Sequence record: MK308675.1
Strand: one strand, 5' to 3'
DNA length: 64,000 nt
In this document: positions 45,110 to 49,739 of the stretch, piece by piece
Position numbering within the stretch: position 1 is the first letter of the stretch
Layout: each line of letters begins with the position of its first letter
The notes under the pieces: model-generated
What the model saw: the letters and a program-made list of their open reading frames with translations, nothing else
Database searches by the model: none
What the model was told of the DNA's origin: nothing
Position numbers and translations under genes: made by a program

Positions 45110-45200
45110 TGTAATACTCCTGTATCCTAAACGATTCGTTCTTTATATACACTTAATCTGTATCTAATGTAGTTAAAAACTTTTTATATGGAGCTTACCA

Positions 45201-45530
45201 ATGACTGGTAAAACGCAACAGGCGACATGGGATGACGTCCATGTTCAATCTAACCTTTGTCTTGTAGGTATACAAGGCTGTCACTCGCTGATGGAGAAAC
45301 TTACTCCATTGCCTCTAAGTGCAGAGTCTAAATCCATTCTTGCTGATTGTTCGACCCAGCTCTTAAGTCTCTGTGAAGAACGTGAGCGCATCATGTCCAG
45401 AGGCGTTAAAGCAGCGAATGCTCATGTAAGCCCCGATGACTTCATGAAGCTCTACAACAAGTACGGTGAAATCGCAGCGTGTAATCGCGGCATTGATAGC
45501 ATCCGTGTTAAACTTTCCAACATAGTGTAA
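45201..45530 (+). CDS. Hypothetical protein
   Basis: 109-aa ORF with a GGAG SD; first gene of a plus-strand unit. Confidence 0.6.
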   Translation: MTGKTQQATWDDVHVQSNLCLVGIQGCHSLMEKLTPLPLSAESKSILADCSTQLLSLCEERERIMSRGVKAANAHVSPDDFMKLYNKYGEIAACNRGIDSIRVKLSNIV

Positions 45531-45542
45531 AGGAAAAGGAAA

Positions 45543-47144
45543 ATGGAAAAAGACGAATTTGATTTAAGCTACCAACCGGAAGCCCTTCCGGAACAGGAGC
45601 AAGAAACAAAGGAACCTGAAGCCCAACCGGTTAACTTTGAATATGACGAGCTGGATATGCCGGAAGGCTACCAGTTTGTTTCGCCGTTCATGGAAGCTAA
45701 CGAAAGCGACATGGCGGAGATTGCCCTGCCCGGTTCTGAAACAGACGTGAATCATTTGGCTCACCTAATCCACGAAATACGTTCAGACGAAACTCTGAGC
45801 ATCGAAGATAGACGAGCGACTGAAGAATACCTTCGTCAGTTGTTAGGTCAAGGCACGCTAAGTGAACGCTATGGCGCTCTGCATGAAGGCAAGACTACCT
45901 TGGCTCAGTACCTAGCCATAGATGGACGCCGCGTTGCTAACTCGCGCATTGGCTTTAAGACCGAAGACGGCACTCGCTTACGCGGTGCTGCTGCGCGTTC
46001 TCGCATGCAGGCTAAACTAGGCACAGGTACTCCTGTGGTTTGGCGCATGTGGCACTCAGGTTTCTCTGTTGAAATGGGTAACTTTGCTCCAGGTGAAATC
46101 TTTAAGCACCAGGTCGACTTGCTTACTGCGGTTGAGAACATCGCTATTAAGACTAACGGCCAAATCCTTTCTGCCGACGATGCGTACTATGTAACTAAGA
46201 TGACCGACTTCTGTATCGAGCACATCTATAACTGTACCATCAAGAACTGGTCACATGACGTTATCCGTCAGCGCCTAGATGTTCGCGACATCTACACTCT
46301 TCTTTGTGCAGGTCTTGCAGCAATGTACCCTAACGGTTATCCGTTTGTTCGTGACTGCCGCTTTAAGATAGATAAAGAGAAAGCCTGTGACTGGTCTACT
46401 CTTAAAGGTCTGGAAGATGTTCGCAAGATTACCCGTCTAGACTTCCGTCTACTTACTTGGGAAGACAGTGACAAGTTCACTCCTGCGCAAGTACGTCTTG
46501 TTAACATGCCATGGGACTCTGTGACGGTCAAGGACCTAGACGACTACCGCGATAACCTACCGGAACAAGTAGTTACCACAGGTGTTCTCAATGAGAAGAC
46601 TGGCGGTGATTCTATCTGGCGTGCGGTTATTCGTGCACCGTTCTATTCTGACTATCGTCGAGAAACTCTAGAATGGGTTTCTGACGTAGAGCTACAAGTT
46701 GACCGTGCTCTAGCTAATGCCCCTGATACTTCTCCTGAAGCTGCTAACGTTCTGCGCCGTCAGTCGATTGAGTCTTACATCAAGCGCATTACTGCACAGC
46801 GTCACTCTAGCTGGATTCGCGAAATTGTCGAGATGGAAGGCACCAGTGAGATTCTTTACGGTGGCGAGAACGTTGGCAAGGAAGGTTTGATTAACCGTAA
46901 AGAAGTCGTAGAGCGTTTAGCTGACATGTCTGAAAACGGTGAAGTCTGTGCTAACCTTATTAAAGCGGTAGAAGACTATAAGGCGGAGAACACATTCTCG
47001 TTCGTGGCTATTCCTAACTTCCAGTGTCCTACTTGTAAGAAAGGCCAGTCTGAACCTAAGGCTACACGACCACACCTAATCCCGATTCCGGTGACTCACT
47101 ATTTTTTCGCTATAACGGTATCGAATTCCGGCCAGAGAAACTAA
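45543..47144 (+). CDS. Conserved protein with C-terminal CxxC, possible tail/baseplate assembly chaperone (phiKZ gp77-like)
   Basis: 533 aa. YPNGYPF, IPNFQCPTC and IP...FF end motifs. The chaperone role is inferred from resemblance to T4 gp26/gp51-type proteins. Confidence 0.55.
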   Translation: MEKDEFDLSYQPEALPEQEQETKEPEAQPVNFEYDELDMPEGYQFVSPFMEANESDMAEIALPGSETDVNHLAHLIHEIRSDETLSIEDRRATEEYLRQLLGQGTLSERYGALHEGKTTLAQYLAIDGRRVANSRIGFKTEDGTRLRGAAARSRMQAKLGTGTPVVWRMWHSGFSVEMGNFAPGEIFKHQVDLLTAVENIAIKTNGQILSADDAYYVTKMTDFCIEHIYNCTIKNWSHDVIRQRLDVRDIYTLLCAGLAAMYPNGYPFVRDCRFKIDKEKACDWSTLKGLEDVRKITRLDFRLLTWEDSDKFTPAQVRLVNMPWDSVTVKDLDDYRDNLPEQVVTTGVLNEKTGGDSIWRAVIRAPFYSDYRRETLEWVSDVELQVDRALANAPDTSPEAANVLRRQSIESYIKRITAQRHSSWIREIVEMEGTSEILYGGENVGKEGLINRKEVVERLADMSENGEVCANLIKAVEDYKAENTFSFVAIPNFQCPTCKKGQSEPKATRPHLIPIPVTHYFFAITVSNSGQRN

Positions 47145-47161
47145 GAGGTACTCTTAGCTCT

Positions 47162-47614
47162 TTGGATGTCGAATTAACGGAAGAAGAAAGGGAAGATGCT
47201 TGGCAGCAGTATTTCGCGATACAAACCCAAGACCCGATAGCGCGTAAGATGATGGCTCGTGAAATCTTTGAGACTTTCTTTAAGATTCACGACCATAATG
47301 TGCCTGACCCGCTCGACCCTTTCCCTCTGGTAACGACTAAACCAAAACGTGCCCAGAACTGGGCGTCTAGAGAAACCATTAAACGGTTGATTGCTATAGG
47401 CGCTCCAGATAAGACAGGCATGAGTCTAAATGAACTCCTCTATGAAACTAACATGTCTGACTTCGAAGACATCATAGAAGCATGTGAGGACGTCATGAAG
47501 AGAGAAAGCGCTACTGCTACTAAACTACGGAATGAATCCGAAGAGCAGATGGCGAAGGTTCTCAATACCATCGAAGAACGAAAGAAAGATAATAATTCAA
47601 GCCCTCTGGCCTAA
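47162..47614 (+). CDS. Hypothetical 150-aa ORF, probably expressed as the -1 frameshift extension of the 533-aa gene
   Basis: Only a TTG start with a poorly spaced SD. The frame is open back to 47060, across the slippery site T TTT TTC at 47102-47108. Confidence 0.55.
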   Translation: MDVELTEEEREDAWQQYFAIQTQDPIARKMMAREIFETFFKIHDHNVPDPLDPFPLVTTKPKRAQNWASRETIKRLIAIGAPDKTGMSLNELLYETNMSDFEDIIEACEDVMKRESATATKLRNESEEQMAKVLNTIEERKKDNNSSPLA

Positions 47615-47624
47615 TGGCCAGAGG
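47603..47624. terminator. Bidirectional terminator
   Basis: cctctggcc/ggccagagg stem between convergent genes. Confidence 0.65.
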
Positions 47625-47635
47625 AGCTTTATTAT

Positions 47636-48148
47636 TTACAGGTCTAGTTGTGGCTCTTGAACGATAGCATCAATCCACTTAAGTGCAAGTGCTTCTTCAG
47701 GCCACTTATAAACATCGCGTTCCAGTTCCTTCAAGATTTCTTCAGCGGGACGACCCCACATCTCAGACATCATGTCGAAAAGAATCTTGTTATAGTGACG
47801 CATTGGACGTAGGCCAGTCTCTGAGCGCTCAGCCATACCGCGAGCTTCATGTAACATGAACTGCGTGTTAGGAAGCGATAGGCGCTTACCTGGAGTACCT
47901 AGGCCAATAACACAGAATGCACCAGCACTCATCACGGTACCGACAGCTACGGTCACGATGTCGCTTTTCGCTTTCTTAGCCGCATGGTACATAGCTAGAA
48001 GCGCAGGGACAGAACCGCCGTATGAATGTACGGGTAGGTAAATGTCTTCACTAGAAATGGAGTCGAAGAATTCGATTTGCTGGATTACACTGTAAGCCAT
48101 GTTATCGTCGAATGGGCCTTCAATGTAGACAGTTCGGTCAAGTACCAT
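47636..48148 (-). CDS. clpP: ClpP-family serine protease (catalytic triad intact)
   Basis: HSYGGSV, VMSAGAF (Ser), KRLSLPNTQFMLHEA (His) and ERD (Asp). Confidence 0.9.
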   Translation of the reverse strand: MVLDRTVYIEGPFDDNMAYSVIQQIEFFDSISSEDIYLPVHSYGGSVPALLAMYHAAKKAKSDIVTVAVGTVMSAGAFCVIGLGTPGKRLSLPNTQFMLHEARGMAERSETGLRPMRHYNKILFDMMSEMWGRPAEEILKELERDVYKWPEEALALKWIDAIVQEPQLDL

Positions 48149-48150
48149 GA

Positions 48151-48720
48151 TTACTCTCCTAACTGTTGTTGAGGCGGACGTGCTGCTTCAATAGGGTTTT
48201 CAAAGTTAGGACGACCCATAACCTGTAGACCCATAGCGATTGCTTCTTCGTAACGGAAGATGTCGTTCTCTTTCATGAAGTCTTTAATGTCATCTGGGGT
48301 GATGCCATCGAATGCTTCAGCGATACGCATACGTGCACGGGCGTTTACTGCTTCTTGGGCAGCGGCACCAATCTCAAGGTCGGTTAACTGTGCATAATCA
48401 GAGCCACGCTGTTCGTAAGGAAGGATAAGAACAGACTCTGTAATGAATGCGTTTTCTTTACCTACAGCGGCTGCTAGCACTAAGTCCATGATGGACAACA
48501 TGTCTAGATAGCGCACCTGAGGCTTAAGAGCTAGGTTCTGACGAATAACATCGTACATGCCTAGTAGAACATGAGGACACACGATAAGGCTTTGCTGTTC
48601 CAACAGTGGCTGGAACGGTTCCTTACCTTCTGTCTCACGTTTAGCATTTAGAGCTTCTACTTCTGCAAAGAAACGCATCAGTGCAAGTGGAGTGCTCAAC
48701 TTGTGACGTTTATGGTACAT
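48151..48720 (-). CDS. Catalytically inactive ClpP paralogue (ClpR-like)
   Basis: 189 aa from ATG 48720 (AAGGGA SD). GMYDVI...LKPQV matches ClpP AIYDTM..IKPDV; TDLEI...MKENDIFRYEEAIAMGL matches TDIEI...[17 protein letters not shown]. The Ser and His positions are not conserved. Confidence 0.65.
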   Translation of the reverse strand: MYHKRHKLSTPLALMRFFAEVEALNAKRETEGKEPFQPLLEQQSLIVCPHVLLGMYDVIRQNLALKPQVRYLDMLSIMDLVLAAAVGKENAFITESVLILPYEQRGSDYAQLTDLEIGAAAQEAVNARARMRIAEAFDGITPDDIKDFMKENDIFRYEEAIAMGLQVMGRPNFENPIEAARPPQQQLGE

Positions 48721-48812
48721 TAGGATATCCCTTAAAAGATGAATAAAAGAACGGCCGGTTCTATTGGATTCGAAGAAAAAAGAAAGAAGAATAGGAGAGA
48801 GCCGAAGCCCTC

Positions 48813-49739
48813 TCATAAATGTTCTGCATATTGTTTCTCTTTAAAGGTTTTAAAGCGTATGCGGATTTTGTCCTTTACGTCTTCCGGGACGTGTACTGCT
48901 GCGGTCAGTTTATCGGCTAGGTCTTTCTCTGTTAGTTCCCAGTAATGACCCATGGCATCTCTTAAGTTAGGGAAGGTTTTAAAGCCGTCTTTATTCTTCC
49001 CCGCTAGCCATTTATCGCCCGACTTCTTAACGCCTAAGATATCGCCTGGTTCGACCCTAGATAGCACATTGAGATATCCGTTTAAAGAAGCTGGGAGGAA
49101 GCAACAGGTGTCTTTAGAATAAAGACGTAGCTCTGGAGCAAGAAGGTCTTTATCGAGCTGGTAAGTCGAATCAGGGATGTTTTCCGTATACCACTTAGCG
49201 AAGTTCTGAAAGTTAAACCAATCAGGATGGACTTCACAATCTTTATATGCTTCGTAGTCTTTGCTGTCTTCTTTATAGCAGCGCTTAAACATATTCATCC
49301 ATGCCGAATACTCAGGCAGATTCTTCCCTCCAACATACTGCTTATACGGGCCATCTCCCAAGAAACCTCTGCCTTCGATTACCGGATGGCACTTGTCTCT
49401 AATCTCTCCCGACTTAAGGCGCTCTTTACGCGTCCACAACTTAAAGCCCGTTTTTACAAACTCTACATGTACTTTTAGGCTGTTCACGTATTCTAAAACT
49501 CGGACAGTGCCATGGTGTTTTGTTTCATGTAGAGTGCCTTCTAGATAAGGGTTATCTAGGCTCTTGTCTCTGACGTCTCCTTTTGATAGTGCCGTTTTGA
49601 ACACTACGTCGATGTTTCCCGTATTCAGGAACTTTACCTTGACCTTATAAGGGTCGTTGTTTTCTATAACCTCGACGGTCCCCGAGCGCTTAGTCTCGTG
49701 TGTAGAACCGACAGGATAAGTGCTTATTTCATATTTCAT
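48813..49739 (-). mobile_element. Free-standing HNH-type homing endonuclease gene
   Basis: Two tandem N-terminal repeats (G..HETK..GTV.V.E....KV.V.F..TG), YSAWMNMFKRCY, W.NFQNFAKWY and QLDKDLL...YSKDTCCFLP, a typical phage HNH endonuclease core. Confidence 0.8.

Follow-up and report, generated by a model that had tools for sequence, protein, structure and literature searches.

The closest described relatives of the locus considered here are all cases in which ribosomes slip into the -1 frame. In the lambda G/GT and P2 E/E+E' genes the slip occurs on a heptamer close to the end of the upstream gene, so that a major short product and a minor long one have a common N-terminus, and the lambda type of arrangement is conserved across a large group of phages despite sequence divergence (PMC5009743; Xu et al. 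2004, cited there). The lambda slip motif is G-rich. In IS3-family elements a -1 slip joins the overlapping orfA and orfB, the downstream ORF having no start of its own, and U_UU.U_UU.C is one of the heptamers found in elements of this type (PMC4066793). In E. coli assays, heptamers of the form H_HH.U_UU.Y belong to the -1 motifs with the highest efficiency, and the tetramers U_UU.C and U_UU.U also tend to shift (PMC4066793). The tau and gamma products of E. coli dnaX also share an N-terminus, their ratio being set by a -1 slip at a homopolymeric heptamer; there the shifted ribosome stops almost at once, giving the shorter form, and an upstream SD and a downstream hairpin are used. In T7 gene 10A/10B, a minority of the product gains a C-terminal extension when ribosomes make a -1 slip at Phe codons that lie only a few codons from the stop.

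The present locus lies in a window of 64,000 nucleotides (the whole stretch of DNA that was analysed, from record MK308675.1) of Vibrio phage vB_VmeM-Yong XC31, a phiKZ-like Vibrio jumbo phage. Two adjacent reading frames on the + strand, here called ORF1 and ORF2, very probably form one gene recoded by a -1 ribosomal slip, although there is no protein- or ribosome-level evidence for this. ORF1 (45543..47144, ATG start) encodes a 0-frame product of 533 aa and belongs to the phiKZ gp077 family. ORF2 (47162..47614), given in GenBank as a CDS of 150 aa with a TTG start, corresponds to the 3' 150 codons of the -1 extension, and is in the -1 frame of ORF1 because (47162-45543) mod 3 = 2. The first of this rightward trio is a small co-oriented gene of 109 aa (45201..45530, +) at the position of phiKZ gp078, and the same small gene is found 5' of the ORF1 homologue in all annotated relatives. 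No promoter-like site was found on the + strand between ORF1 and ORF2, and directly 3' of ORF2 there is a terminator-like hairpin of 9 bp, 7 of them G-C (47603..47624, +), with the ORF2 stop in its loop and a T-rich tail after it. Judging from the sequence alone, this hairpin probably marks the end of the rightward unit, facing a convergent ClpP-like gene on the - strand (47636-48148). The locus lies between the gene for an RNA polymerase beta-type (virion-RNA-polymerase) subunit and a block of ClpP-like and helicase genes, in conserved synteny, in keeping with an initial annotation that had placed the locus away from any tape-measure gene.

Close to the end of ORF1 the 0 frame reads CAC TAT TTT TTC GCT, which contains the slippery heptamer T_TTT_TTC (47102..47108, +) in the X_XXY_YYZ phase, over the codons of Phe521-Phe522, and the -1 shift is proposed to take place here. 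After the heptamer the 0 frame has 11 sense codons and then TAA at 47142-47144, and the -1 frame is without stops from 47060 through 47611. The initial annotation had reported the heptamer, its phase and its position 12 codons before the stop, the open -1 frame running into the 150-aa ORF, and the fact that this ORF has only a TTG start with a GAGG about 12 nt away. All of these points held, the GAGG being 13 nt upstream and inside a hairpin stem. An open overlap of 85 nt is, on its own, nothing remarkable. The sequence TTTTTTC occurs 7 times in the whole window against an expected 17.1 +/- 3.8, so that the motif is avoided, and the presence of the heptamer alone is not beyond chance. Since the heptamer, the overlap and the downstream hairpin are each unremarkable when taken alone, the significance of the site comes entirely from its conservation in relatives.

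It had been proposed that homologous gene pairs be aligned across the Chimalliviridae, and the locus passed this comparison: the homologues keep a T-run in phase, their -1 frame is open, and the -1 length is nearly constant. The same architecture (a T-run slip site that is in phase and aligns with that of the window, with the -1 frame open across it and the downstream ORF in that frame) is present in 31 of 32 related loci, phiKZ included; were the frame free, the chance expectation would be 1/3 per independent clade. ORF1 identity to the window ranges from 17 to 50% across the 32 loci, which come from phages of Pseudomonas (phiKZ, PA7, PhiPA3, 201phi2-1, Noxifer and Psa21), Vibrio, Erwinia, Klebsiella, Serratia, Salmonella, Escherichia (Goslar), Proteus, Xanthomonas, Ralstonia and Burkholderia, together with metagenomes. 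The gene family is present in all sampled clades of phiKZ-like (Chimalliviridae) phages. The sole deviating record, RTH11, has a different frame relation at ORF1/ORF2. The site, its phase, the open frame and the conservation of all three are matters of direct observation.

The codons used at the site point in the same direction. Phe-Phe is present in 28 of the examined loci and is encoded as TTT TTY in every one of them, and the 3 loci that lack it nevertheless keep T_TTT or T_TTT_TTA at this place. The full heptamer, T_TTT_TTY/A, is present in 26 of the 31 conforming loci and a tetramer in the other 5, namely Noxifer, PhiPA3 and Psa21, in which the base before TTT is G or A, and two metagenomic loci with the T_TTT tetramer only; lacking the full heptamer, these five would depend on single-tRNA slippage. 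The T-run itself is 5-8 bases long across the examined loci. All genomes tested use TTT for the first Phe of the site, whereas elsewhere in these genes TTT is the minority Phe codon (101 TTT against 188 TTC; 0/14 in Xoo-sp14). The slip-site TTT is thus fixed against each gene's own bias, with a joint P of ~1e-7 over 14 non-redundant genomes. The best 150 of 1532 family representatives all end 8-26 residues past the site, and not one of these 150 is an in-frame fusion of ORF1 and ORF2. All 29 GenBank records inspected give two separate CDSs, with very different starts for ORF2.

The -1-frame extension comprises 168 codons and a stop (47108..47614, +), and its slip-site-to-stop length is conserved in the family, at 153-176 aa in the 28 loci with a Phe-Phe site. 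By comparison, ORF2 as annotated in the corresponding GenBank records has anything between 68 and 182 aa, and its relatives in the protein database have between 88 and 149 aa. The first ATG, GTG or TTG of the -1 stretch falls anywhere from codon 8 to codon 85 across relatives (85 in phiKZ/PA7 and in AH06, 73 in L012, 68 in Desertfox), and the -1 peptide 5' of any possible start is conserved and colinear from residue 1. PA7 and Psa21 are 42% identical over 84 aa of this peptide (E = 6e-17, computed against a purpose-built database of 17 sequences), and L012, the nearest relative of the window at 50% identity, matches it at 60% over 73 aa. The window's TTG start is not present in L012. From the slip site on, differences between relatives by -1 codon position number 27/16/44 over 73 codons, a third-position excess. 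The same tendency is seen in the dual-coding overlap (47108..47144, +), in which the 11-codon 0-frame tail with its stop coincides with the 12 codons that open the -1 extension: between the window and L012 the substitutions are 2,1,5 by codon position in the -1 frame versus 1,5,2 in the 0 frame, being concentrated at -1-frame third positions. The -1 frame from the site onward therefore bears a coding signature where no start codon exists. Of the -1-frame pieces, 15/17 match phrog_12109. Nothing credible was found for the stretch in Pfam (1/17 members, E = 0.0095) or in the PDB (best E = 0.98), and its single-sequence model was poor (pLDDT 51) and was left out of the fold search.

On the reading that we favour, the majority of ribosomes would read TAT TTT TTC in frame, add the 11-residue tail and stop at 47142, giving the 533-aa form. 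A fraction would slip one base back with two tRNA-Phe on TTT TTC, both of which should be able to re-pair with T TTT TT, and would then read 168 more codons in the -1 frame and stop at 47612. The predicted long form, of ~690 aa, would have the same first 522 residues followed by the 168 of the extension, and the site would fix the ratio of two isoforms of a putative zinc-binding protein of unknown function and unmatched fold. That a -1 product of ~690 aa exists beside the 533-aa protein, and that the gene is misannotated as two, had been suggested by the initial annotation, and the comparison supports it, again without protein-level evidence. Both forms are probably functional, an inference drawn from the short tail, a helix with partial conservation, and from the long extension, of which both length and sequence are conserved. 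Family-wide, the 0-frame tail has L/I at +2 in 90%, R/K at +6 in 82% and R at +13 in 62%. The ribosomal shift itself, its efficiency, the trans-frame protein and the importance of both products are all inferred from sequence. In the literature searched, which did not cover subscription-only papers, there is no published report of a phiKZ or Chimalliviridae frameshift at ORF1.

The ORF1 family includes phiKZ gp077, PhiPA3 gp074, 201phi2-1 gp136 and EL gp047, and ORF1 matches phrog_4585 (2.3e-48). A word-indexed search with ORF1, and then with an 11-sequence alignment, gave only 4 proteins each, the acidic, Pro-rich N-terminus of ORF1 having probably swamped the word filter, and a search for related loci from an alignment of Vibrio-clade ORF1 sequences gave 1 locus. 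An exhaustive profile search was used instead, and it identified the 1532 representatives mentioned above (50% clustering). Cys 272, 282, 495 and 498 are near-invariant in the family, and in 98 aligned sequences F521 is invariant and F522 is present in at least 90%. The AF2 model of ORF1 is confident (pLDDT 85.3, pTM 0.85). There is no match to Pfam and none by sequence to the PDB, in which the best fold match has E = 1.7. A Foldseek search of BFVD gave weak matches to T4-like 'baseplate hub assembly protein' entries (E ~2e-3, target TM 0.43-0.47, ~355 columns), and the homologue is named 'baseplate protein' in 3 GenBank records, which do not state the evidence for the name; the baseplate hub naming is without Pfam or PDB support. 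The protein is probably not in the virion, although the evidence is only indirect: the 201phi2-1 record flags gp138 as found by mass spectrometry and does not flag gp135/136, and the ORF1/ORF2 pair goes unmentioned in the virion model of Goslar, which comprises 28 proteins.

A hairpin over the 0-frame stop, with core ctaagag-gta-ctcttag at 47141-47157, had been noted in the initial annotation as extendable. It is indeed present, and the minimum-energy fold lengthens it outward (47132..47165, +); it covers both the stop and the GAGG, and a role as stimulator was not supported. With a folding energy of -19.6 kcal/mol it is no better than shuffled sequences (z = -1.4, with 18/200 shuffles folding at least equally), and it lies 23-32 nt from the heptamer, as against the usual 5-9 nt. 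A hairpin at a similar distance was seen only in L012. When the 75 nt downstream of the site were folded in 17 genomes, most of the folds did not surpass shuffled sequences, there was no common stem, and the z values were scattered around 0 (-3.1 to +2.3). The non-significant z and the lack of conservation rule out the window hairpin as a family-wide stimulator. Upstream, GGTGA (47091..47095, +), which is complementary to the 3' end of 16S rRNA, lies 6 nt before the heptamer and is in the best 8% of ORF1 windows for anti-SD complementarity. It may be a local stimulator in this phage. Such a match upstream of the site is not conserved, however, its median rank being 0.53 over 22 genomes, and an SD-like stimulator is thereby ruled out as a feature of the family. 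A stimulator is common but not obligatory for -1 frameshifts of the X_XXY_YYZ class. In the absence of a conserved stimulator, and with the window hairpin so distant, the efficiency of the shift could be low.

Other explanations of the locus need to be considered. The phage or host RNA polymerase could stutter on the T-run, giving mRNAs with one base fewer or two more and hence the same long product. In favour of such transcriptional slippage, the site is always a T homopolymer, the frame relation in RTH11 fits variation in homopolymer length, and E. coli genes avoid runs of U7 and A7, perhaps on account of such slippage (PMC4066793); these phages, moreover, transcribe with multisubunit RNA polymerases of their own, for which the slippage behaviour is not known. 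Against it, efficient slippage by bacterial polymerases needs runs of about 8-9 or more, and the 6 T of the window and the 5 T of Noxifer are shorter than this. The run is always in the phase required by a ribosomal X_XXY_YYZ or Z_ZZN site, and of the 5 loci in which the run is short or altered, 3 still have a canonical heptamer, which is T_TTT_TTA in L031 and T_TTT_TTC in both the window and Xoo-sp14. Entry into the -1 frame also requires the loss of 1 base or the gain of 2, whereas transcriptional slippage mostly adds one base. We regard this alternative as unlikely.

Less likely still is that ORF1 and ORF2 are two separate genes, the second being started at TTG 47162 or at an internal ATG, perhaps by coupling to termination, with the overlap and heptamer incidental. 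The uniform GenBank annotation favours this, as do the TTG 18 nt past the ORF1 stop with its upstream GAGG, and the fact that ORF2 relatives form their own families in PHROGs. Yet the conserved peptide begins before the first possible start, the TTG is lost in so near a relative as L012, and the GAGG (47145-47148) is poorly spaced as well as buried in the hairpin stem. Two genes would also leave unexplained the constancy of frame (31/32), the fixed distance from site to stop and the TTT codon bias. It remains possible that a minor independent product is made from the window's TTG or from ATGs further in. Finally, a single gene of 690 aa might appear as two because of a miscalled homopolymer, or might have suffered a genuine frameshift mutation. 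Homopolymers are error-prone and RTH11 is anomalous at ORF1, but 31 genomes or metagenome contigs, sequenced independently and with differing run lengths, are all split in this way, the 150 best representatives from the profile search include no intact fused gene, and the 0-frame tail is itself partly conserved. Sequencing error or gene decay is therefore all but excluded. The ribosomal slip remains the preferred reading. A bolder version of it, which we consider improbable, is that this is an ancient frameshift working with no recognisable cis stimulator, that its efficiency is set in trans, for example by the nascent chain or by those phage factors that are known to bind the ribosomes of the host at an early stage of infection, and that the isoform ratio changes during infection, the site being a regulatory switch and not a fixed-ratio device.

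The phiKZ-like nucleus-forming phages are a major model of phage cell biology and candidates for therapy, and most of their conserved genes are without known function. In all records inspected the phiKZ gp077 gene is misannotated, and it probably has two isoforms. PHIKZ076.4, PhiPA3 gp073, 201phi2-1 gp135, Goslar gp082 and others are probably not genes of their own, each being the C-terminal part of a protein of ~690 aa, and many genomes carry no annotation for the N-terminal half of the extension. The interpretation of knock-out, Tn-seq, proteomic and localisation data from these loci is affected by this. The site is probably new, the recoding mechanism being already known, and with it the few phage recoding events outside tail-chaperone genes gain a frameshift that is deeply conserved and has no evident stimulator.

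Compared with the known systems, the locus resembles lambda G/GT and P2 E/E+E' in its general plan as inferred from sequence, but ORF1 has 533 aa and not ~140, it is not located between tail-tube and tape-measure genes, and its slip motif is T_TTT_TTY. The initial annotation had called the pair 'G/GT-like', and this holds only as an analogy of mechanism, ORF1 being four times larger and not recognisable as a tail-assembly chaperone. No homology of the ORF1 family to such chaperones was found in Pfam, PHROGs gave only 1/11 members matching phrog_3792 (E = 0.024), and chaperone matches in BFVD had E of 0.9 or worse and a probability of 0.14 or less; the lack of significant similarity, the size and the gene position all speak against that identity, which we reject. 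With IS3-family orfA-orfB the locus shares overlapping ORFs, the second without its own start. IS sites, however, are usually accompanied by a stimulator (a pseudoknot or hairpin downstream, an SD-like sequence upstream, or both), and no such element is conserved at the ORF1 site; Pfam revealed no transposase homology. The setting of an isoform ratio at a homopolymeric heptamer recalls dnaX, except that here the shift would make the longer form and a stimulator was not found. As for T7 gene 10A/10B, its product is a capsid protein with a short extension, whereas the protein here has no known function and would gain an extension of 168 aa; the two would nevertheless have in common a slip on Phe codons shortly before a stop, leading to a C-terminally extended form.

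Over bases 45200-47700 the window matches Vibrio phage vB_VmeM-Yong XC31 (MK308674.1) and its three sister isolates without a difference; these are jumbo phages of Vibrio mediterranei (278-290 kb). GenBank lists two hypothetical proteins here, at 45543-47144 and 47162-47614, and the same two-gene annotation is present in every record inspected. The initial annotation had proposed that these form a single recoded gene, joined by a -1 ribosomal frameshift, and its reading of the frames held. The upstream gene (ORF1) encodes 533 aa and the downstream one (ORF2) 150 aa from a TTG start, in the -1 frame relative to ORF1; the 0 frame reads TAT TTT TTC, which puts the heptamer T_TTT_TTC (47102-47108) in X_XXY_YYZ phase; and the -1 frame has no stop from 47060 up to the ORF2 stop. 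After the heptamer, the 0 frame continues for 11 sense codons to a TAA. The motif by itself is no proof of frameshifting. TTTTTTC is under-represented in the window (7 observed vs 17.1 +/- 3.8 in shuffles), a scarcity compatible with a possible avoidance of slippery T-runs.

A comparison across homologues, suggested as a check by the initial annotation, was carried out, and the slip site, the open -1 frame and the frame relation were found in 31 of 32 loci. The junctions were read in the window, in 28 GenBank phages whose hosts span eleven genera, in one IMG/VR contig and in three metagenome contigs, the last three picked for proteins without the Phe-Phe pair that the site encodes. The pair is present in 28 of the 32 loci. 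All 28 use TTT TTY codons for it and place it at an equivalent point of the alignment; the preceding base is T in 25 and G or A in 3, and in each locus the -1 frame is open across the site and holds the downstream ORF. The 0-frame stop lies 8-44 codons past the site, and the -1 stretch, which extends from the site as far as the ORF2 stop, has 153-176 codons. Three loci without Phe-Phe still have a T-run slip site (T_TTT in two, T_TTT_TTA in one) and a -1 ORF. The sole exception is Xanthomonas phage RTH11 (OQ790161.1), where the ORF2-like frame is shifted by +1 instead of -1 from the body of the annotated ORF1, and the annotated ORF1 extends to 627 aa in a third frame; the length of a homopolymer may have been miscalled, or the variant may be real. 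Outside the site, the ORF1 genes use TTT for Phe less often than TTC (101 vs 188; TTT is 0/14 in Xoo-sp14 and 2/21 in PhiPA3), whereas at the site the first of the two Phe codons is invariably TTT (P ~1e-7 for 14 non-redundant genomes, an approximation that treats them as independent).

The ORF1 family is found in 161 phage records, every one a phiKZ-like jumbo phage; the PhiPA3 record names phiKZ gp077, 201phi2-1 gp136 and EL gp047 as homologues. An exhaustive profile search gave 1,532 representatives at E <= 1e-3, of which 951 were at E <= 1e-30. In 145 of 152 family proteins checked (the 150 best representatives and two found earlier), Phe-Phe is followed by 8-26 residues (median 13). Within this 0-frame tail, the 145 proteins have L/I at +2 in 90%, R/K at +6 in 82% and R at +13 in 62%, and in the confident ORF1 model the tail is the last helix (517-532). 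Because the tail is partly conserved and helical, the overlap (47109-47141 in the window) is considered to be dual-coding family-wide. From sequence and model, it is inferred that the short and long products are both likely to be functional. FBKp24, PCH45 and Haymo have longer tails, of 37-44 aa against the usual 8-26.

Independent initiation of ORF2 was considered and rejected. The first ATG, GTG or TTG of the -1 stretch falls anywhere between codons 8 and 85 (85 in phiKZ/PA7 and AH06, 73 in L012, the closest relative of the window, and 68 in Desertfox), and because the first available starts differ among genomes, the annotated ORF2 lengths vary, from 68 to 182 aa in the examined records. The annotated TTG of the window is absent from L012. 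Upstream of the first starts, the protein is conserved and colinear from the first codon past the site: the PA7 segment matches Psa21 at 42% over 84 residues, Noxifer at 39% and PhiPA3 at 40%, and L012 matches the window at 60% over 73 residues (E-values for these comparisons come from a 17-sequence database made for that test). Over these 73 codons, the window and L012 differ at 27/16/44 sites in -1-frame codon positions 1/2/3; the short overlap has few differences, split 2/1/5 when read in the -1 frame and 1/5/2 when read in the 0 frame. The -1 stretch matches phrog_12109 in 15 of 17 genomes, and is predicted with low confidence to be helical.

An accidental or dispensable split is disfavoured because intact fusions would then be expected alongside, and there are no in-frame fusions among the 150 best of the 1,532 representatives, all of which stop only a few residues from where the profile match finishes. 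The long product could also arise if RNA polymerase slipped on the T-run (5-8 T). Such transcriptional slippage is not excluded, but is unlikely, given that several genomes have only a short run and that its phase is in every case the one required by a ribosomal site. The preferred reading remains a -1 ribosomal frameshift.

The ORF1 model has a pLDDT of 85.3 and a pTM of 0.85 (98 aligned sequences). It has no match in the PDB (best E 1.7). Its BFVD matches are members of its own family and, at weak significance (E ~2e-3), entries that carry the name 'Baseplate hub assembly protein, bacteriophage T4-like' or 'Baseplate protein'; a homologue is also called 'baseplate protein' in three GenBank records. 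The BFVD matches hint at a possible role in tail or baseplate assembly, as a lead only, and the hint fits poorly with the Churi phage study, which places the gp077 homologue among the early-expressed proteins (PMC11849849). The 201phi2-1 record does not include gp135/136 among the proteins found by mass spectrometry, whereas the neighbouring gp138 is included. The initial annotation had likened the pair to G/GT-type chaperones; this was borne out only as an analogy of mechanism, and no significant link to tail-assembly chaperones was found. Four cysteines (272, 282, 495 and 498) are near-invariant family-wide, the last two forming a C-P-x-C about 25 residues ahead of the slip site, and we infer from the sequence that they probably make up a zinc-binding site there.

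Local gene order is kept among relatives: two minus-strand genes, one of them for a virion-type RNA polymerase beta subunit, precede a plus-strand trio made up of a small gene, ORF1 and ORF2, and in the Vibrio clade minus-strand ClpP-like and helicase genes follow. Beside the pair, the ClpP-type protease gene (47636-48148, minus strand; Pfam CLP_protease, 3.7e-30) is conserved in the Vibrio clade, whereas the records of the remaining clades examined (phiKZ, PhiPA3, Noxifer, Erwinia, Klebsiella and others) annotate none at this place. Between ORF2 and this convergent gene there is a terminator-like hairpin (47603-47624; 9 bp, 7 of them G-C), whose loop contains the ORF2 stop codon and which might act in both directions. 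Also on the minus strand, the longest ORF at 48151-48816 has 221 aa, with the GenBank CDS starting at 48720 (189 aa), and a further TTTTTTC (48775-48781) sits within the difference.

No conserved stimulator was found among the relatives, either downstream or upstream of the site. The hairpin at 47141-47157 reported by the initial annotation exists, but is no better than chance (z = -1.4; 18/200 shuffles fold equally well); local stimulation by it, or by a GGTGA that lies 6 nt upstream of the heptamer, is possible, though not shown. In E. coli, H_HH.U_UU.Y is among the most efficient -1 heptamers, and U_UU.C and U_UU.U are the most shift-prone tetramers after A_AA.G (Sharma et al., PMC4066793); because that study ranks both kinds of motif high, the canonical sites and the five tetramer-only sites are both covered. 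We found no published account of the site in the literature searched. The mechanism of -1 frameshifting is itself classical, and the ribosomal shift is here inferred; what is new is the case, a deeply conserved one, seemingly without a stimulator, affecting a jumbo-phage gene that is itself conserved and has no known function.
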